From assembly GCA_965603825.1 (NCBI GenBank), contig CBFDEM010000062.1:124001-188000 (forward strand): a stretch of 64,000 nucleotides of DNA, given 5' to 3'. The position numbers and the translations under genes were made by a program. The stretch is from Blepharisma stoltei ATCC 30299 (taxonomy: Eukaryota > Protista > Ciliophora). The notes below the pieces were generated by a model. It saw nothing but the letters and a program-made list of their open reading frames with translations, was not told the DNA's origin and ran no database searches. Positions 1,768 to 22,102 of this stretch are shown piece after piece. How positions within the stretch are numbered: the first letter of the stretch is position 1; the number at the start of each line of letters is the position of its first letter.

Positions 1768-3794
1768 TTAAAGCAGCCCATTGCGAAACAAAATAATCTT
1801 AATATCTCTAATAGAGATGAAGCGAAGTGAATTTTCTTCTCCTAAAAGTATCGAATGAAAATCTAATAAAATTTCCAAATAGCCACACTTAACAGATGAA
1901 ATCGTCGCTGGAAACGACCATATCTTTTTATTTTCCATAAATTTGCGATTTGGAGTCTTCAGCCATTTTCCCTTTTTTACGAGAAGACTATGTATTGCTA
2001 TTTTATCACCTAGATGATAGGACTTGTTCATTGATGTGAGGGTATCTTCACGTCTTTCTTTACGTTTTCAATTACTTTTTCATTCAACTCATTAGAGTTA
2101 GAAAAAAAGATATCACTGGGTATAATGCTGGTTATAGTATGTTTCCGACAGTGTTGTAATGAAATAGAATTGAAAAAATGCTATATTTATATTATAGTGT
2201 TATATAAATTAGCTCTTTCTTGCATATAATTGCAGTAAGCTATAATTTTACTTCATCTTGATGCATTATTTTCGCTTAAGTAGCTTTTATGCAGCTGCTT
2301 ATGAAGATGCAGTAAAATGATAAAATATTTTTGTAAACTTCATAAAGTGCAATATAATTTTTTTTTAAATCTAATCTAATAATCAATTATAATTGTCCAT
2401 TTCTTTATTGCAGAATTCCTTACCGTTGTCTGTTTGTAGAATCTCTGGAAGTCTAGGTACAGATTCTAATGACAGTTGAAAGTTCTTTACAACTTCGCCA
2501 GATGTTTTGGTATATAATGGATAAGCTCACAAATACTTAGAGAAATGATCAACTATCGACAAAATGTAAGTTAAATTTATTACATTTGTTAGTATCTTGA
2601 ACGATAAAAAAATACTTATTCATCATATATGTTATAAACGAACTTGGAAACATTTGCAAGGGCAGGGCACAAGTCTATTTGAAACCTTTCTGATGGTTTT
2701 GTCGAGACAGTTTGTAATTTTATAGGAGGTTTCATTTGCTTCCCAAGTTCAACTGTGCAGATTATGCGATTTCTGATCAATAAATTTTGTTTTTTAAAAT
2801 TCATTCTTCCATTTCTCTGGGTGGTATGTGATTGCACTTATTCTGCACATGTGCTAATTGAAGATTTTTTGGAATTTCCCATATAAATGGGGTTATTAAA
2901 TTTCTGATTTTTCAAATTAATCTAGATTCAGTGTAATCATTAATATCTTCGGTCTGGGGCAAAAGTTTATAGTTAGTATGTACTCTCCTTTTATAATTTT
3001 GAAATTTCTTCTTTTCTCATAAGGTAGGTCATATAATTTGGCTGGAAAATGAAGTCTTTCTTCTTCTTTCTCTTCTGACAATAAAAAATGATATATATCA
3101 TCTAAATTCTTTTTCCCATGTGAAAGAGGAAATAGTCCAGACTTATTTTCTTCGTTTTTTAATTGGTTTAAAAGTTCTTTGTGGATACTAGCTGTTTGTG
3201 AATAAATAGAATTGTCTAATTTATGTTGTGATTTAATATTTAGAGTTGGTTTTTGAATAGAAAATCCTTTATCAATCAGCACATTATAATGAGAATTGTG
3301 CAAAAACAATAAATTTAGAGTGATCTCGTTAGGACTATCATTTTTAATAACCCATGATTGGGTCAGAATGTCTGAGTAAATGGTTATTGTAATACCAAAC
3401 AGTTCAGATGCTGCTCCAAGTTCTATTTCTCCACCCCAAAAGCCATTTGTCTTTAATTTTGTGACATATTCATAGAAATTACATTTATTTTTTAATTTGA
3501 ATGTGATTTCCAAGCAGTTCACGATACCTATCCTCATTGCTAGCAATATAATCAGCTATCATAGTCCTGATAGCAGAGTGACCTTCCTGAGTTGTGCTAT
3601 AATAAAAGAAATGGCTCGATACAAACAGTTTCCATCACCTTTGATAGGAACTAATGTAAATTCTTATAGGAGCTGTTGGATATGCTCTTATAATTGTCAA
3701 CATCTTGCTTAGTTACTTCAGAGTTAGAAATTTCTGGAATTTCAACTTGAAAAGGATTAGAAAAAGGTTCTTTCTGATCATAATCTAAAAGCAT
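1768..3794 (-). mobile_element. Decayed OTU cysteine protease + H2C2 + rve/DDE integrase element (Ginger/GIN1-like), pseudogenised
   Basis: Across frameshifts: IKGDGNCLYRAIS, H..IR..IADYI, WGGEIEL, HNSHY (OTU); LAH..NH..IY[TGA] (H2C2); ERFQIDL, YILSIVDHFSKYL[TGA]AYPL, PEILQTDNGKEFCN, YN..KH...IIP..IFF (integrase core); YHLGDKIAI...WSFPATI (C-terminal module). Boundaries are those of the remnant ORF; no termini found. Confidence 0.8.
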
Positions 3795-4033: not shown

Positions 4034-4104
4034 GTCGGTGTAGTTTAGTGGTAGAATCTTACGTTGTGGCCGTAAGTACCTGGGCTCGATTCCCAGCACC
4101 GACA
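4034..4104 (+). tRNA. tRNA-His (GUG)
   Basis: Acceptor GTCGGTG/CACCGAC + discriminator A; anticodon arm TTACG-TTGTGGC-CGTAA; T arm CTGGG-CTCGATT-CCCAG; no encoded G-1 or CCA, as in eukaryotes. Confidence 0.95.
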
Positions 4105-5207: not shown

Positions 5208-7544
5208 TTAATAATTTCTGATTAAATCTTCAATATAATCCAGACTTCTCATAATCCCAATCTGCTGGTTTTCTATTTCCAAAATCGAATCCTGTATGAT
5301 TTTTTGGTCTTCATTAATTTTTTTTGTAGAGTGATTTAATTTAATCAAAATTTCGCTATCAGCCGTATTTTCATCCCTAGGAGTCAATTCAAACCCCAAG
5401 AGCTCTGAAAGTGTGCTTTCATCATAAATCCAGTTATCTGACGCTGAAATTTTGGTCGCCTGTGTTCTATTAGTCGCAGGGATTTTTAACTCCCTCTGAC
5501 TAACTGGCTCAAAGCTCTTCATTTCTGTGAAATTTAAAGATAGAGGTAAATGTATTGGCGAAATTGACCTAAAATCAAGCGTTGCGCTTCTGTGTCTCAT
5601 TCCTTCTTCATTGCCGTTGATTTTTGGAACTGATGTTAAAATTGATTTTTTGCGTCTTCTCATCATTTTGATGCCTTCGTCGTCATCTTCAGCGTAGACT
5701 GTAGATGACCGCCGAGGTCCTCGACGATTATTGCTAGAAAGCACATGTGACCATAAGCTTAAGTTTTTAAATTTATCAGCTGAAAACTGCATACTGGCTA
5801 CCATAATCCCAGTGTCAGCTCTGAATAAGCGATGGACGCTTTCTTCATCTTTTTCAGATACTGAAATCAAGCTGTTTTCTGAATAATTCAGATCAGGCAG
5901 CTTTGTGTTTGGGATTAAGTTTAAAGAATGCGCCAGAGATGCAGAAAATTTTGAAGCTCGGGCTTTATCGATTTCTTTGATTTCTTCATAAACGTCTGGA
6001 AATTCGTTCATAATGATAATAAAATCCCTTTTTGAGAGGACAAGGAAGCTTGATATTACAGAAATTTCAATAGAAAACAGACGAGGAGAATTAATAATAA
6101 GTTCATGCTCTCCAAAATATGACCCATCTGCCATTGTTCTGAAAGCGACCCCATTTGAAGCTCTAAATAAGACTCTTCCTTTTTTTAAAAAATACATTTC
6201 GTCAGCTATTTCTCCTTCTCGGTATACATATTCTGACCGGTTTCCAGTCATGCTTTTCAGCTTTGGGACGATAGCTGACAGAAATGAAGGGTTTCTTAGG
6301 TTGAAAAAATATATGTTATCGATTACTTTTCTATATAAATAAAGAGTGACTTCTGCTTTTAGAGATGAAGGAAGCTCGCTAAGCATAGTAGCTTCATCTA
6401 TATCTTCTGATAAATTTTCTTTGAAATTTTCAATAATTGTATGTTTGGCTTTTATTTTGACCTCATCTGGCAAATTTATGTCTTTTGATAATTCATTAAG
6501 ACTTTTTAGTCTTGTATCAATCAGCGACCTCCTTTTATCAATTGTTTTTAATTTTGACATCCAGGTGCTGATTGTATAAGAATAAAAAGTGCTCCCAAAA
6601 GCCATCAAGGATATGGCGAACACTTTTTCAACTTTCGTCCTTGCTACTATATCTCCGTAGCCAACAGTAGTAAGTGTGGTAAATACAAAATAAATAGAAG
6701 TTATATACTGTGAAAAAATCGAATCGTCCGTCATTGCATACCGGTTCATCCATGACTCATAATTCGATATCTGCAGCCTTCCTATTATATGTCAAAAACA
6801 TCCAATTATATGTACAACTATAAAATAAGTGACCAGAATTTTAAAAATTCTGAAAATCGTCATAATTTTTTGATTTTTTTTGTTTTTGTTTTCGCTTATC
6901 CACCGAGATAGGAAATTTGTGTTTTGTAAAATTCCGGAATATCGGTACAATAAGAAAAGGCGAAGTAATTTAAGGAATTTTAATAAGTCACATAATGATC
7001 CGTCAGGATCATTAATAGTTCACTTTCAGAATTCCATTGGAATCATGGCAGCTACATCAATAATAAATCAGCTTTTAATGTACATAATAACAATATCTTT
7101 TCTAGATGTCACAATTTTGTAATTGCTTTTGACATATATGGAATTTACGATAAACAGCATATTTAAAAAGATCAGACAGTCAATAGTAGTTTCTAGCTGC
7201 CATGGGTGCTTAGTTTGAAAACTCACAGTAAAAGGAAAACCTATAGCAGTTCAAATTAAAAAAGGCCAAAGAATGCAAACCCAAACCTGACTAAAAAACG
7301 AGTCAGGTCTGAAAAGATGGTCATCCTTTGGTCTTTGTTTGGTTTCTTGAACCATTGTTCAATAATGTGGCTGGGTTCCAAAAAGTTGAATGTCTTTCTT
7401 TAATCCTGATAGCCGAATAGCAGTATTTAAGGCACCTCTAAGACGCATTCATAAGAGGTCGACTCTGTGTTGTAGCTGAATTTCTCCTTTGGTCTGAGTT
7501 TCAACAGTTGAAGCGTAAAAGCCTTCAGTAGTCCCAACATTCAT
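5208..7544 (-). CDS. Cyclic-nucleotide-binding-domain K+ channel (KCNH/EAG-like), 778 aa
   Basis: TTVGYGD filter, C-linker, CNBD (YVYREGE...GSYFGE); frame extends 265 codons upstream of the track ORF through 7 TGA (e.g. YIKS-W-FIID, IGCF-W-H) to ATG 7544. Confidence 0.9.
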
Positions 7545-7721: not shown

Positions 7722-9476
7722 TTAGGCACCGAACCTTATATCAGTAGCTAAATTCCTCAATGCTCTATCGGATATCTGCAAAATTGGACCCCATTCAGCT
7801 AATAATTCAGGCTTTTCAGAAATTCCTTCTCTTGAGGAAACTGAAAATTGTGTCATTCTATTCAATAAATCCTTTTTATCACGAATATTCCCTGATTTAA
7901 ACTCTTCAACGCATCTTTTCAAATTTTCTAAATTTTCTAACAAATTATTTATTTTGTGTGTTTCTTTTTGTTCTTTAAGCTCATTGAAACTATTTATTTG
8001 TGTTCCTTCCAAAGCTTTGCATAAGCAAACAGGATACGCAAACTCTTTTCCATTAGCAACCAATTCTCCGTTTTCGCAGACAATTTTCATATCAATATTC
8101 CCAGGCAAATCTTCAATATGTCTTCCAGGGCAAAAAGAATCTGGTGGATTTTTTGTAAAAATTGGGTTAATTTCAGTGTCTCTTGCTTGCCAACTTCTCC
8201 CCAGCATCCCTGTAGGAATTAATTTAACTTGTGCAATGCTATTGTCTTGAATACAAAAATTATCCCCAATTTTAATTTTTTTTTCTATAAATGGCAGCTC
8301 TTTGTGCCCAGTGCCTGTGTTATATAAAACAGTGTTAACTTTTCCTTCTTTTACAATAATTTTGTACCGTAAAGGGACTCCTTTTGCGTCATTTTCAAAA
8401 TTCGTATAATCAGATCAGCTTTGTTCAGGTAAAATATATACAACTTCTATGGGGATTTCTTCAGATGTGTCTTCTACATGGACATGTAATAAATTTATTA
8501 CATGAGGTGACAATTCTGAGGTAAAAATTTCTATGACTGATTCATAGACAAACCCGCAGTCTTCACTTATCAAAACTTGGTTAAATTTCACAGTGCCGTC
8601 TTTGCCATCTACTTTTATTATTTTGTCTTTGTTAAAAATAATTGAGTAGTCTGAAAGCGGTAAGCCTTGAGGAGAAATTTCGATAGGGCAGCAGCTTTGT
8701 TCGTCGTCAAATTCAATAATCTGATATACAACAGTAATTATGTTTTCGTCTAAAGAGTCCATAAAGGCTTTACTGTCTTCTTCTGAAAGAGCGATAACTC
8801 CTTTTAGGTCATTTAAAGATATTTCTATATTTCTAGGTCTCAATAGTGCAATTCCATTTTTATCAGCATATTTTATCATCTTAAAATAAAAATCATTTTC
8901 TTCTCTGACGATTTCAAGCAATTGATAAGCACGCTCAGTATCTTTTTCTAATAAAATAGTTTTTCCGAACCCAGTCTGGAGCTTTTCTATTAATTCGAAT
9001 ATATGGGAATCAATTCGGTTTCTCATTGCTTGGTATGTTTCTCTAATAATGATTTTTTTAGCTTTATATTCTTCTTTAAGTTTTTTTATTCGTGATTTTA
9101 TTTCAGCGTTCATGATTGATTTTTGTTCTATTAAAGGGTTTATCCTATCAAATAATTTGCTGATTTCAGAATTTTGTGCAGAATTTTTAAAATTTCTTTT
9201 TGGCTTTTCTTCTAGATGTCTAAGTGTATCTGTTCGCTTTAGAGTTTCAGGAAATTGAATATGAATTGCATTTCCGATTAATCTTGTGAAAAATTTTAAA
9301 GATTCCACTGAAACCATTTGAGGTTTCGTCAGATTTGGTTGAACTTTATTCAGCATAACTGCCAAAGCTGGCAATAATGATTTTTTTCCTAATTCTCCTT
9401 CTAGTTTTTCTATATATGCGTTTTTCTGCTCCAATTCTTTTTCTAGTTCCTCAATCCTTCTTTGCAACTCTTCCAT
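7722..9476 (-). CDS. Hypothetical protein, 584 aa, N-terminal coiled coil
   Basis: Two track ORFs join in frame via TGA 8415-8417 and 69 stop-free codons. Confidence 0.7.
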
Positions 9477-16745: not shown

Positions 16746-19253
16746 TTAGTTAGCGAAATATAGAAGAATTTCATTATATGTGGGACTTGGAGAAAATTCT
16801 TCTGTTATCTCGACAGATTCAGCCATGGAGCAAAGAAAGTTTGAAATGGCTGGTTTTGTTTCACATAAATCGTCAGAGGCATCTTCAAGTTCTTGTTTAA
16901 TGAAAGTTCCATCAAAGCGCCAATAATTTGTTATAAAATGCTCAATTAAAGTTGCAAGAGTGTTGATATAAATAGTTTCCTGAGCTATCTGAATTTCTTT
17001 TATCATCGCTGACAATAAAAATGTTGAGTTTAATGACTCTTTGCTATCATAAATGATTTTTTTAATTATCAAAGCTTCTGGAGTATCAAAAAGCCTATAA
17101 AAATGCAATACGTCTTTGATTAGTTCTGAATCTTCACTATTTTCTATTATAAAACATGCAAAAATTATGTTCTCTACCGATAAATTATAAAGCTCTTCAT
17201 TAGAAGCACATAAAAGTTTACTATAAAAATAGCATGGCTCTAGCTCAGCACTTAAGCTTCCATTTTCTTTTGCTTCTATTAAATTCCACGCAACTTCTCT
17301 ATCTTTACATTTTTCAACTAAATTTGTATAGCAAATAAGCCTCGCTGATCCAAAATCATAATAATCTTCTATCCGATCTAATTTATATTCATCCCAAAAA
17401 GGTCTATATATCCGGGTAAAAAATTGAGACAGTTTATGTGAGATTTGTTTTAAATATTTATTCTCCCATAAAAGTTTAGTTACTTCACTGGTATATTTGA
17501 TAATAATATATTCATATTCTGGAATCATAGAAACAATTAAATCTGCTAAGCAAGCAAATCTAGATTTAGTTGACGTATAAACCTGAATGCAATCACTCAA
17601 AAGTCCATATCTATCTTCAGCACTTAAGAGTTTTATTGATTTTATTATTTCATCAAATATTTCGTCAGAGTAAATTGACCGATAGAAACCCATGGTTTTG
17701 AAATTTAGCTTTATCCATTTACTTGGCTTTTCTAATTTAATATTTGCAGACTTATCTTTGAATAGCACATAGTGAACACTCAGGTCGTCTGTAATAAACT
17801 TAATAGGAACATGCCACAAAAGAGGACTATTTTGGGCTAAAGAAGAATATTGAGTTAATTTATACTCTAAATCATCAATTTTTTTTACTGTAATCAGAGG
17901 AAACCCTGCTTGTCTCGTCCAGCATTGCATTATTTCTCCGAGTTCTGGAAAAGAAAATTCAGCTAAAACATCCCAAAGCATGTCTGTTGTCGTATTTTTC
18001 CATTTATACACATTTAAATACTTCCTAATCCCATTTAAAAATTGTTCTTCTCCTATAAAATCTTCTAGCATCCTTAGTACAGAAGCTCCTTTTGCATAGC
18101 TAATTGCATCAAAGATTTCTTCAATTCTATTCGGATCATCGCACTCCACTTCAATTGAGTGGGTATTTTTCTGTACGTCCTTAAGCATAGCAATATTCCA
18201 TACATCTATAAGAAATTTCAGTCAAATTTTAAATTTTGGCTTCAAACTATTCAGACATTTATATTCAATAAATCTCGCAAACCCTTCATTTAACCACAAA
18301 TGTGTCCATCATTCCATAGTAACGAGGTTCCCAAATCACATGTGGGATATTTCATGACAAAGAGTACGGCAGTTTCTTGGGAAAAGCTGAAGGTCTTCAT
18401 TTGGGAGTCTTTCTATACAATAATCTGCAAATGTTATAGATCCCCAGTTTTCCATAGCTCGATATTTTAGTTCTATATTAAAATTACTGAAAACTGAAAT
18501 AAGGTCAAGTTTCTGTAGCGGGTATGAAATCCCAAAATAATTATTGTAAAAATCAAGGGAAGATTTGGCAAGCTCAAGAAAATCGTGCGAAAAATCAATG
18601 TTTTCGGCATATAAACTAATTTTTACCCCACAGTCAGCAACAATAGATATTTGGTTGTGCTTGCATATAGTCCAATGCAAGAGGTAGCAAGACATCAATG
18701 GTGTTTCTTCGAATTTATAAGCTGTTTTGCTACCTAAAGCATTTTTTTCTGTATAGTTCATATTAGAAATTACAAAAAAATCATCATCTGCTGTGACGTT
18801 TAATTGAAATCTGGCTTTCATTATTGGCTCATCAAAGCATGGAAAAGCTTTTCTGGCATAGATAGGCTCGAAATGAGTAGTAGCCATAAGAGTTCTATTT
18901 GTGCTTGAGCATACGTAGCTTCCTTTTATCACGAAATCCATCTTGACTTCAAAATCAATTTTAATTTTAATTTCACCTTCAATCTCTGTAGGGAGTTCAA
19001 TGCACATTTTATCATTATTTGTTGGGAAATACGATAAACCAGACTTCATTGGATAGACTATAGCAATATCTGTAATAACTAAAGGGCTGTCTGAATGCAT
19101 GCAAAATATTTTTGATGGAGCTTCTATAAGAATGGTGACTGTTTCTGTTCCAGTATAGTATTGCTCTCTCATAAAGCTAGTTAAAAAGTACTAGTCTAAT
19201 GAGATAGCATAATAAGTAGGCTTGATGTGCTGAGGAAGTCTTGTATCTGACAT
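16746..19253 (-). CDS. M1 zinc aminopeptidase copy A, 825 aa; introns 19177-19191 and 18473-18487
   Basis: RLP..IKP..Y, THFEPIYARKAFPCFDEP, RAMENWG, HEISHM[TGA]FGNLVT...WLNEGFA, FDAISYAKG. Confidence 0.9.
18473..18487 (-). other. 15-nt intron (in frame, no stop)
   Basis: GTAATTTTAATATAG; removal restores canonical LDLI-x8-AMEN spacing; the paralogous intron is 16 nt and must be spliced. Confidence 0.85.
19177..19191 (-). other. 15-nt intron
   Basis: GTACTTTTTAACTAG; retention gives TAG. Confidence 0.88.
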
Positions 19254-19271
19254 TTTATTAATTATAGATTG

Positions 19272-19469
19272 TTAATTAGGTATCATAATAGTAACCTTTT
19301 TGTCCATAGTCTATCTCTTCCTTTGTCTTTATCTTTATTTGATTTTTCTTCTTCTGTTTCTTCGTTCTCTTTCATTTGTTTTTAGCTCAGTTTTTGAATT
19401 TCTTTGTTTTTCTTCAATTCTTTTTTCATTTTTCTAGCTTGCATCCAGCTGTCGACTTTGCTTTTGATT
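19272..19469 (-). pseudogene. Orphan duplicated 3' end of the PKD2-like gene
   Basis: Matches 22121-22319 with small deletions and substitutions; no 5' part. Confidence 0.85.
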
Positions 19470-19593
19470 GCAGGCGATACCCAACTAATATCCTAGCTCA
19501 TTTAATATTTGATGCATAAATTTAAAGCTATTTTTAAATCAATTATGCTTATTTTTCTATATAAAATTTAAAAATGCTTTAGAAATGCTTGCA

Positions 19594-22102
19594 TTAGTTA
19601 GCGAAATATAGAAGAATTTCATTATATGCTGCATTTGAAGAAAATTTTGCTGTTATCTCGACAGATTCAGCCATGGAATAAAGAAAGTTTGAAATGACTG
19701 GCTTTGTTTCACATAAATCGTCAGAGGCATCTTCAAGTTCTTGTTTAATGAAAATTCCATCAAAGCGCCAATAATTTGTTATAAAATGTTTAATTGAACT
19801 TGCAAGAGTGTTGATATAAAATGTTTCCTGAGCTATCTGAATTTCTTTTATCATCGCTGACAATAAAAATGTTGAGTTTAATGACTCTTTGCTATCATAA
19901 AGGATTTCTTTAATCTTCAAAGCTTCTGGAGTATCAAAAAGCCTATAAAAATGCAATACGTATTTGATTAGTTCTGAATCTTCACTATTTTTCATTATAA
20001 AACACGCAAAATTTATGTTCTCTAAAGATAAATTATAAAGCTCTTCATTAGAAGCACATAAGAGTTTACTATAAAAATAGCATGGCTCTAGCTCAGTACT
20101 TAAGCTTCCATTATCTTTTGCTTCTATTAAATTCCACGCAACTTCTCTGTCTTTGCATTTTTCAACTAAATTTTTATAGCAAATAAGCCTCGCTGATCCA
20201 AAATCATAATAATCATCTACCTTATCTAATTTATATTCATCCCAAAACGGCCTATATATCCGAGTAAAAAATTCAGACAATTTATGTGAGATTTGCTTTA
20301 AATATTCATTCTCCCATAAAAGTGTAGTTACTTCACTGGTATATTTGACAATAATATATTCATATTCTGGAATCATAGAAACAATTAAATCTGCTAAGCA
20401 AGCAAATCTAGATTTAGTTGACATATAAAACTGAATGCAATCATCTAAAAGCCCATATCTATCTTCAGCACTTAAAAGTTTTATTGATTTTATTATTTCA
20501 TAAAATACATCGTCAGAGTAAATTGACCGATAGAAACCCATGGTTTTGAAATTTAGCTTTATCCATTTACTTGGCTTTTCTAATTTAATATTTGCAGACT
20601 TATCTTTGAATAGCACATAGTGAACACTCAGGTCGTCTGCAATAAACTTAATAGGAACATGCCACAAAAGAGGACTGTTTTGAGCTAAAGAAGAATATTG
20701 AGTTAATTTATACTCTAAATCATCAATTTTTTTTACTGTAATCAGAGGAAACCCTGCTTGTCTCGTCCAGCATTGCATTATTTCTCCGAGTTCTGGAAAA
20801 GAAAATTCAGCTAAAACTTCCCAAAGCATGTCTGTTGTCGTATTTTTCCATTTATACACATTTAAATACTTCCTAATCCCATTTAAAAATTGTTCTTCTC
20901 CTATAAAATCTTCTAGCATCCTTAGTACAGAAGCTCCTTTTGCATAGCTAATTGCATCAAAGATTTCTTCAATTCTATTCGGATCATCGCACTCCACTTC
21001 AATTGAGTGGGTATTTTTCTGTACGTCATAAACCATAGCAAAATTCCATACATCTATAAGGAATTTCAGCCAAATTTTAAATCTTGGCTTCAAAATATTA
21101 AGACATTTATATTCAATAAACCTCGCAAACCCTTCATTTAGCCACAAATGGGTCCATCATTCCATAGTAACTAAGTTTCCAAATCACATGTGGGATATTT
21201 CATGACAAAGAGTACGGCAGTTTCTTGGGAAAAGCTGAAGGTCTTCATTTGGGAGTCTTTCTATACAATAATCTGCAAATGTTATAGATCCCCAGTTTTC
21301 CATAGCTCGAGATTTTAATTCTATATTAAAAATTACTGAAAACTGAAATAAGGTCAAGTTTCTGAAGCGGGTATGGAATCCCAAAATAATTATTGTAAAA
21401 ATCAAGGGAAGATTTGGCAAGCTCAAGAAAATCGTGCGAAAAATCAGTGTTTTCAGCATATAAACTAATTTTTACCCCACAGTCAGCAACAATAGATATT
21501 TGGTTGTGCTTGCATACAGTCCAGTGCAAGAGGTAGCAAGGCATCAATGGTGTTTCTTCGAATTTATAAGCTGTTTTGCTGCCTAAAGTCTTTTTTTCTG
21601 TATAGTTCATATTAGAAATTACAAAAAAATCATCATCTGCTGTGACGTTTAATTGAAATCTGGCTTTCATTATTGGCTCATCAAAGCATGGAAAAGCTTT
21701 TCTGGCATAAATAGGCTCGAAATGAGTAGTAGCCATAAGAGTTCTATTTGTGCTTGAGCATACGTAGCTTCCTTTTACCATAAAATCCATCTTGACTTCA
21801 AAATCAATTTTAATTTTAATTTCACCTTCAATCTCTGTAGGGAGTTCAATGCACATTTTATCATTATTTGTTGGGAAATACGATAAACCAGACTTCATTG
21901 GATAGACTATAGCAATATCTGTAATAACTAAAGGGCTGTCTGAATGCATGTAAATTATTTTTGATGGCGTTTCTATAAGAATGGTGACTGTTTCTGTTCC
22001 AGTATAGTATTGTTCTCTCATAAAACTAGTTAAAGAGTACTATTCTAAAGAAATAGCATAATAAGTAGGCTTGACGTGCTGAGGAAGTCTTATATCTGAC
22101 AT
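19594..22102 (-). CDS. M1 zinc aminopeptidase copy B, 825 aa; introns 22026-22040 and 21321-21336
   Basis: Same motifs as copy A; after splicing both copies are exactly 2478 nt. Confidence 0.9.
21321..21336 (-). other. 16-nt intron
   Basis: GTAATTTTTAATATAG; explains the apparent frameshift between track ORFs 21326..22021 and 21184..21459. Confidence 0.88.
22026..22040 (-). other. 15-nt intron
   Basis: GTACTCTTTAACTAG; same position as in copy A. Confidence 0.88.

Follow-up and report, generated by a model that had tools for sequence, protein, structure and literature searches.

The periodic IESs of Blepharisma fall into published length classes of 64-66, 70-74, 80-84 bp and so on (PMC9942856 Table S1), and the same work discusses both the presence of transposon sequences in the Blepharisma MAC and the view of excision as a continuum. 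In Paramecium, loss of IESs by conversion to MAC-destined sequence and an excess of weak IESs outside genes have been described or proposed (PMC8354472), and recruitment of IESs into exons, deletions in pseudogenes and a higher IES density in weakly expressed genes have also been reported (PMC3464196). While the birth of IESs has been well studied, their death by conversion to somatic sequence has mostly been inferred. A pseudogene with known protein homologues allows dead and live IESs to be compared side by side, and the transposase relic described here, which loses eight true IESs and retains three AT-rich segments that may be fossil ones, offers such a comparison.

The relic lies in a window of 64,000 nucleotides of Blepharisma stoltei ATCC 30299 DNA (GCA_965603825.1, contig CBFDEM010000062.1, positions 124,001 to 188,000), for which the best-fitting genetic code reads UGA as Trp and retains TAA and TAG as stops. 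Window and contig agree base for base over 21 kb. A second assembly, GCA_914767885.1 (CAJZBQ010000062.1), contains DNA identical to the window together with extra inserts; on the basis of these inserts and the description in PMC9942856, the former is taken as the somatic MAC and the latter as the MAC+IES version of one strain. Comparison of the two extends over the 34.1 kb covered by both, and, as the MAC+IES assembly was scaffolded on the MAC, it shows which segments were called germline-limited rather than providing an independent check of the MAC bases. In the database and HMM searches the pieces of the relic were queried separately, and scripts translated short junction windows to list the possible boundaries.

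Domain by domain, the relic can be followed on the minus strand from an OTU protease domain to a C-terminal domain (Table 1), colinear with a germline-only relative, L004 (see below), at a protein identity of ~25-54%. One piece of the integrase core matches Pfam rve and one scores 79.8 bits against a family HMM, whereas the C-terminal pieces of both the relic and L004 match no Pfam profile, the YPYY and GPY/F arrangements being similarities recognized by eye. A search for TIRs near the window copy recovered no terminal repeat remnant. Besides the three retained segments there are five or six frame changes, at ~3.7 (the least certain), 3.6, 3.5, 3.0, 2.76 and 2.06 kb, together with the loss of a zinc-finger Cys and of the catalytic Glu. 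The relic is a pseudogene regardless of the fate of the three segments; indeed, given the other frameshifts and the lost catalytic Glu, their removal could not revive the transposase. A divergently oriented tRNA-His(GTG) gene is found at 4034..4104 (+), ~270 bp upstream of the relic, and elsewhere in the window (16749-22039, minus strand) are tandem duplicate M1 aminopeptidase genes.

Table 1. Features of the transposase relic, its excised IESs and its retained segments (coordinates of the window)
Feature	Position	Strand	Remarks
Decayed OTU-integrase transposase pseudogene (Ginger-like relic)	1790..3770, ends approximate	-	colinear with L004 from OTU to C-terminal domain
OTU protease domain	3270..3663	-	spread over three reading frames; Pfam OTU/Peptidase_C65 matches on separate pieces
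YPYY-like stretch and H2C2 zinc-finger region	2739..3096	-	frameshift and deletion removing one Cys; YPYY likeness by eye
Integrase core	2389..2690	-	first Asp 2673-2675; second Asp (QTDNG) 2413-2436; split by segment 1
C-terminal domain, GPY/F-like arrangement	1801..2064	-	36% identity to L004 C-terminal piece, E 7e-14
Excised true IES junction	1866..1868		80 bp, ATA repeat
Excised true IES junction	2129..2133		71 bp, TGGTT repeat
Excised true IES junction	2249..2250		196 bp, TA
Excised true IES junction	2537..2539		808 bp, TTA, C-rich Bogo-like ends
Excised true IES junction	2836		120 bp
Excised true IES junction	3081..3083		71 bp, ATA
Excised true IES junction	3185..3187		130 bp, ATA
Excised true IES junction	3524..3526		80 bp, ATA
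Retained AT-rich segment 1	2567..2636		59 bp (TA 2567/TA 2626, in line with the spacing in homologues) or 68 bp (TA 2567/TA 2635, TAA repeat)
Retained AT-rich segment 2	2307..2391		77 bp between TA 2313 and TA 2390; at site of ~24 missing codons including catalytic Glu
Retained AT-rich segment 3	2165..2226		best fit 60 bp (TA 2165/TA 2225, ATA repeat); alternatives 48 and 70 bp

Over the 34.1 kb compared, the MAC+IES assembly differs from the MAC by 40 insertions, eight of which fall in the 1.97-kb relic (p=0.002), with the share rising to seven of 21 when only IESs shorter than 200 bp are counted (p=1e-4); the resulting density, 4.1 per kb in the relic against 1.0 per kb in the rest, also exceeds the estimated intergenic rate (p=0.004), these p-values being optimistic in that IESs cluster elsewhere too (at most 5 per 2 kb), though the region was picked before the IES positions were known. 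All eight are absent from the window, and by eye the homology to the paralogue continues across their junctions. That eight IESs are excised from within the relic indicates that it is MAC-destined DNA undergoing normal IES excision and not leftover germline DNA. The short ones among them, of 71, 71, 80 and 80 bp, all sit within the published length peaks, and the shortest true IES in the entire comparison measures 69 bp. Off-peak length alone was discarded as a sufficient cause of retention, as true IESs of 69 and 75 bp are excised nearby, and none of the eight shows the transposase similarity expected of a carrier of the missing coding DNA. Two more true IESs, at window positions 1276 (75 bp) and 1649 (687 bp), prolong the IES-dense stretch just past the 3' end of the relic. 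The comparison further revealed that the IESs at 2537 and 11323 (~800-880 bp) are 84% identical over ~810 bp, contain internal repeats, have C-rich ends and constitute a longer Bogo-related family. Seven other true IESs (window 7850, 8209, 8926, 38165, 39456, 49955 and 52276) have direct repeats of 8-16 bp and an AT content of only 46-64%, two of them with short tandem tails; in appearance they are closer to insertions flanked by long target duplications than to IESs of the TA type.

Segments 1-3 behave differently from these eight. They are present in both the MAC and the MAC+IES assemblies and none of the three is among the 40 germline-only inserts; consequently, they lack the conventional attribute of an IES, namely presence in the germline and absence from the MAC consensus. 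In composition they do resemble IESs, being unique, non-coding and 81-87% AT. The individual values of 82%, 87% and 81%, which agree with the figure of about 80% in an earlier reading made from the sequence alone, may be set against 66-68% in the adjoining coding DNA, and 70-nt windows reaching 81% AT are limited to 11 of 6324 in host CDS and 0 of 204 in the element's coding sequence. True short IESs have AT fractions of 0.74-0.90 and are roughly of the same size. Searches of the segments for integrase or transposase homology found none, and their matches to other IESs do not go beyond homopolymers. Spliceosomal introns, which in Blepharisma are 15-16 nt long (10.1101/2021.12.14.471607), were rejected, there being no GT-AG pair that accounts for any of the three, just as the earlier reading had observed. 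Its further statement that the host genes are without such inserts is correct for the window, where host ORFs are uninterrupted; however, they appear IES-free only because this is a MAC assembly, and in the germline version host genes carry ordinary IESs.

The boundaries of the segments can be evaluated against the spacing of conserved residues in related integrases; as the nearest uninterrupted paralogue is only ~25-54% identical at the protein level, they rest on this spacing rather than on a DNA alignment. The sequence-only reading had placed the TA dinucleotides at 2567 and 2635 around segment 1 and at 2313 and 2390 around segment 2, and all four are present. Removing the 68 bp between the first pair does join SKFV to YILSIVDHFSKY in frame, but this boundary is not unique and the cut is three codons too long by comparison with the homologues: 15 residues separate the first catalytic Asp from the Tyr of Y-I-L in 26 of 27 relatives, whereas the 68-bp cut leaves 12. 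The segment has 59 excess bases, and a 59-bp TA-bounded cut (2567/2626) yields exactly 15. At segment 2, removal of the proposed 77 bp forms the predicted DNY-C-I junction, whose Y-C matches YC in 53 of 77 relatives; however, the homologous frame is then lost, with a stop after ~10 codons, and ~24 codons including that for the catalytic Glu are absent. Segment 3 had been thought to lack a clean TA pair, but one exists at 2165/2225, enclosing 60 bp with an ATA direct repeat and lying in frame. Measured against the relatives this segment has exactly 60 excess bases, and the 60-bp in-frame cut matches the 17 residues that separate the Trp-equivalent from the H-S/T His in 61 of 62 of them. A precise cut restores the interrupted sequence at segments 1 and 3 but not at segment 2, where the 24 codons are missing. 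Because the relic copy has suffered further deletions, the estimates of 59 and 60 bp could be wrong by a few codons.

The caution that TA boundaries may match by chance proved well founded. TA pairs can be drawn for all three segments, and in simulations a frame-equivalent pair arose in 17%, 45% and 67% of random AT-rich inserts at 3, 6 and 9 nt of slack, respectively; being so frequent by chance, TA ends carry little weight. The best-fit lengths of 59, 77 and 60 (or 68) bp are off-peak or sub-minimal, though 64-bp and 70-bp alternatives also exist. With respect to the sub-terminal consensus TAT rrn ttt, each segment has one TAT end, and the segments score from 1.1 to -5.9 as compared with a median of 2.8 for true IESs, on a PWM built from only 15 IESs. 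These scores, which are low and lie toward the bottom of the range of true IESs, span the 24th-88th percentile of AT-rich background and overlap both true IESs and background. Hence, no positive IES signature of the segments rises above chance, 45% being expected for TA pairs at 6 nt of slack and the end scores lying within background.

The reading to which we lean, with some reserve and on the strength of sequence comparisons, is that segments 1-3 are fossil IESs, which became non-excisable by decay in a pseudogene free of selection. It preserves the core of the earlier proposal that IESs were retained in, or decayed within, a MAC-resident transposon: IES origin followed by decay is plausible and the best available reading, although the segments are not annotated IESs. 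Forming a continuum with it is the rather unlikely alternative that the segments are weak but live, or cryptic, IESs whose excision affects only the smaller part of the MAC copies and therefore does not show in the consensus. In its favor, 10,048 cryptic deletions, bounded by TA and TTA/TAA and with a median retention of ~95%, have been reported; at lengths of 68 and 77 bp segments 1 and 2 are readable with TAA/TTA repeats, the nearby excision of the 69- and 75-bp IESs implies that off-peak lengths are allowed, and in Paramecium weak IESs have an extragenic bias. The poor end motifs of the segments, along with a homologue spacing that favors sub-minimal lengths, count against such residual activity. 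A comparably improbable origin is as AT-rich filler unrelated to IESs, i.e., break-repair filler, a decayed MITE or some other insertion in a dead gene. The chance-level TA ends and the want of TIRs or a clear end motif are in line with this, as is the replacement in segment 2 of coding DNA of like length (82 versus 72 nt), as repair filler might do. However, filler would have to account for three inserts of IES-like size and composition that alternate with three true IESs within 480 bp, in a stretch denser in IESs than any other examined, and for the D-N-Y-C-I junction of segment 2 agreeing with YC in most relatives.

Two further explanations that the sequence-only reading had offered are highly improbable even when taken jointly. 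Selective, programmed non-excision that keeps the transposase inactive would agree with the breaking of the integrase frame by segments 1 and 3; yet five or six other frameshifts, the zinc-finger deletion and the loss of the catalytic Glu have inactivated the gene already, and eight IESs of the very same gene are excised normally, making such a device very hard to credit. The idea that the element in its entirety is germline DNA that escaped full elimination, considered here together with contamination of the assembly by MIC DNA, draws on the germline limitation of the full-length relative L004, but it is refuted for incomplete elimination by the eight real IESs inside the element that are excised in the window. 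Further, the element lies in the MAC scaffold of both assemblies and has no TIR left to delimit it as one unit, which together render this the least probable of the explanations considered.

A scenario built on the fossil-IES reading can be outlined as follows. A copy of a Ginger-like OTU-integrase transposon lost its terminal repeats, became MAC-destined and decayed to a pseudogene, as the homology, lesions and MAC status of the relic show. Weak selection on the relic may then have permitted IESs to build up to about four times the density of the surroundings, the density being observed and its cause being what we propose. Eight of these IESs are still removed by the normal excision machinery, while three further probable IESs would have decayed past excisability and now pass to the soma. 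Among the latter, segments 1 and 3 have apparently shrunk to ~59-60 bp, below the shortest class of 64-66 bp, and segment 2 probably suffered a deletion that affected one of its ends, or the DNA beside it, and also removed ~24 codons with the catalytic Glu. A single event taking an IES end together with the adjoining codons would account for both the retention of segment 2 and the missing Glu; its conserved Y-C junction is, however, better fitted by a precise 77-bp insert and a deletion beginning a few bases away. Retention of the segments would be a neutral outcome of pseudogenization rather than a device for silencing the transposase.

The closest relative of the relic was recovered in a phmmer search with its OTU-linker piece, which returned a single close match, P0002, encoded solely in the MAC+IES assembly. 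This protein belongs to L004 (CAJZBQ010000005.1, 5397-9471), a complete 4.1-kb germline-only element with perfect 33-bp TIRs, TG..CA termini and a 6-bp CATGTC TSD in place of TA. Its content is one transposase ORF region, coding in order for an N-terminal OTU domain, a zinc finger, a DD35E core and a C-terminal domain; the integrase scores 60.9 bits against Pfam rve, above the cut-off, with D-35-E spacing and both the H..H and CxxC present, and relatives match Integrase_H2C2. A few frameshifts in L004, mostly at homopolymers, may stem from errors in the IES consensus, which derives from uncorrected reads. The element resides within a CLAMP-domain gene, the annotated span of which exceeds the product by 4,081 bp, and deleting it with one repeat copy restores the end of that gene. 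BLASTN of L004 against the window is essentially blank. Additionally, L004 carries a 9-bp C-rich minisatellite running inward from the left TIR (5411-5725), like the BstTc1 microsatellite, and a Bogo-type MITE nested in its 3' part (9007-9346).

The same OTU-first layout recurs in an AT-rich metagenome contig, L054 (3-1902), and the architecture is thus not a one-off. More widely, the proteins P0023-P0142 and the contigs L054 and L007 represent a large related integrase family, mostly on short metagenome contigs; both contigs that were checked have 22-24% GC and the standard code, one of them being OTU-first, and the hosts are possibly protists. A homologue search with P0002 returned only P0002 itself and one with short integrase pieces gave no candidates, whereas in a wider search the 120 best matches listed included a single Blepharisma paralogue, P0053, with the rest coming from metagenome or sequencing-run assemblies. 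Viral and metagenome scans produced distant integrases only, and cluster look-ups of the neighboring genes brought up no second strain near the relic. A contig of a related species, L055 (SRR24908292), shows 68-78% nucleotide identity and partial synteny with the window at 17.9-35 kb and ends well short of the relic. The L004 element is apparently undescribed: the words integrase and OTU are absent from the Blepharisma germline paper and its supplement (PMC9942856), where rve is not among the domains surveyed (Table S4), and a literature search of incomplete coverage turned up no Ginger-type element described from ciliates.

As for their significance, the retained segments themselves have no likely function, and they are most likely a case of neutral IES decay within a pseudogene, which varies a process already known. 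Of more use are two other outcomes: the IES-dense relic, a test case that yields a testable statement on the minimum length for the excisase, and the germline transposon. The latter extends the germline inventory of Blepharisma by a DNA transposon of the integrase (rve) type, and since it is removed precisely at a 6-bp repeat other than TA, one may ask which enzyme cuts it. A bolder generalization, which we advance only tentatively and hold to be doubtful as a whole, is that transposase pseudogenes of the soma act as IES sinks that record IES death, wherein shrinkage below ~64 bp or end loss makes an IES non-excisable and thereby marks the smallest size that the Blepharisma excisase can handle, and that the parent of the relic is a new, OTU-first Ginger-like family with a 6-bp TSD, the full-length copy of which leaves a host gene precisely, as a 4-kb IES that lacks TA ends.

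When placed beside the known systems, the segments are like the periodic IESs of Blepharisma (Seah et al. 2023, PMC9942856) in being short, AT-rich, unique, non-coding, open to delineation by TA repeats and interleaved with true IESs; they differ in not being absent from the MAC, in their weak end motif and in their lengths, with 59-60 bp lying below the first peak at 64-66 and 68 and 77 bp lying between peaks. The conversion of IESs to MAC sequence and the weak IESs of Paramecium (PMC8354472, PMC3464196) provide a parallel for IESs becoming MAC-destined under relaxed selection, whereas the Blepharisma case concerns a transposase pseudogene of a heterotrich with a ~4-fold IES density and apparently involves shrinkage or a flanking deletion rather than mutation of the TA. 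Retrotransposons of the Blepharisma MAC that contain an internal IES (PMC9942856) are likewise transposon-derived MAC sequences bearing IESs; however, excision from them removes coding DNA and disables the gene, while the IESs of the relic are non-coding and their excision restores continuity.

On the transposon side, an LTR retrotransposon was excluded for L004, the terminal repeats of which are inverted and not direct and in which no RT ORF was called or seen. With Ginger1 (Bao et al. 2010, PMC2836005) it shares the organization of a cut-and-paste TIR element having a Gypsy-type DD35E integrase, an OTU protease domain and TG..CA ends, and the combination of an H2C2 finger and a Gypsy-type DDE core typical of Ginger1 is found in it. 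However, the OTU or Ulp1 domain of Ginger1 is C-terminal (PMC2836005), as opposed to the N-terminal OTU of L004, the relic and L054, and the 4-bp CCGG/CCGT TSD, 40-270 bp TIRs and TGTNR ends of Ginger1 (PMC2836005) contrast with the 6-bp CATGTC TSD, 33-bp TIRs and TGGTC ends of L004, which, unlike Ginger1, resides in a ciliate germline and behaves there as an IES. Ginger2/Tdd, GingerRoot and Polinton/Maverick/Tlr resemble L004 in combining an integrase-type transposase with TIRs, although an OTU fusion was not found in the descriptions of these groups that were consulted (PMC6839031 for GingerRoot). GingerRoot (PMC6839031) has the 6-bp TSD of L004 but differs from it by TA..TA ends and 100-150 bp TIRs, and Polintons also have a 6-bp TSD, whereas the AG..TC ends, large size and DNA polymerase and viral-type genes of the Polinton/Maverick/Tlr elements have no counterpart in the 4.1-kb L004. 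Judged by these features, L004 is probably best viewed as a Ginger-like element that is set apart from Ginger1 by OTU position, TSD and ends, and from GingerRoot and Polinton by ends and content.
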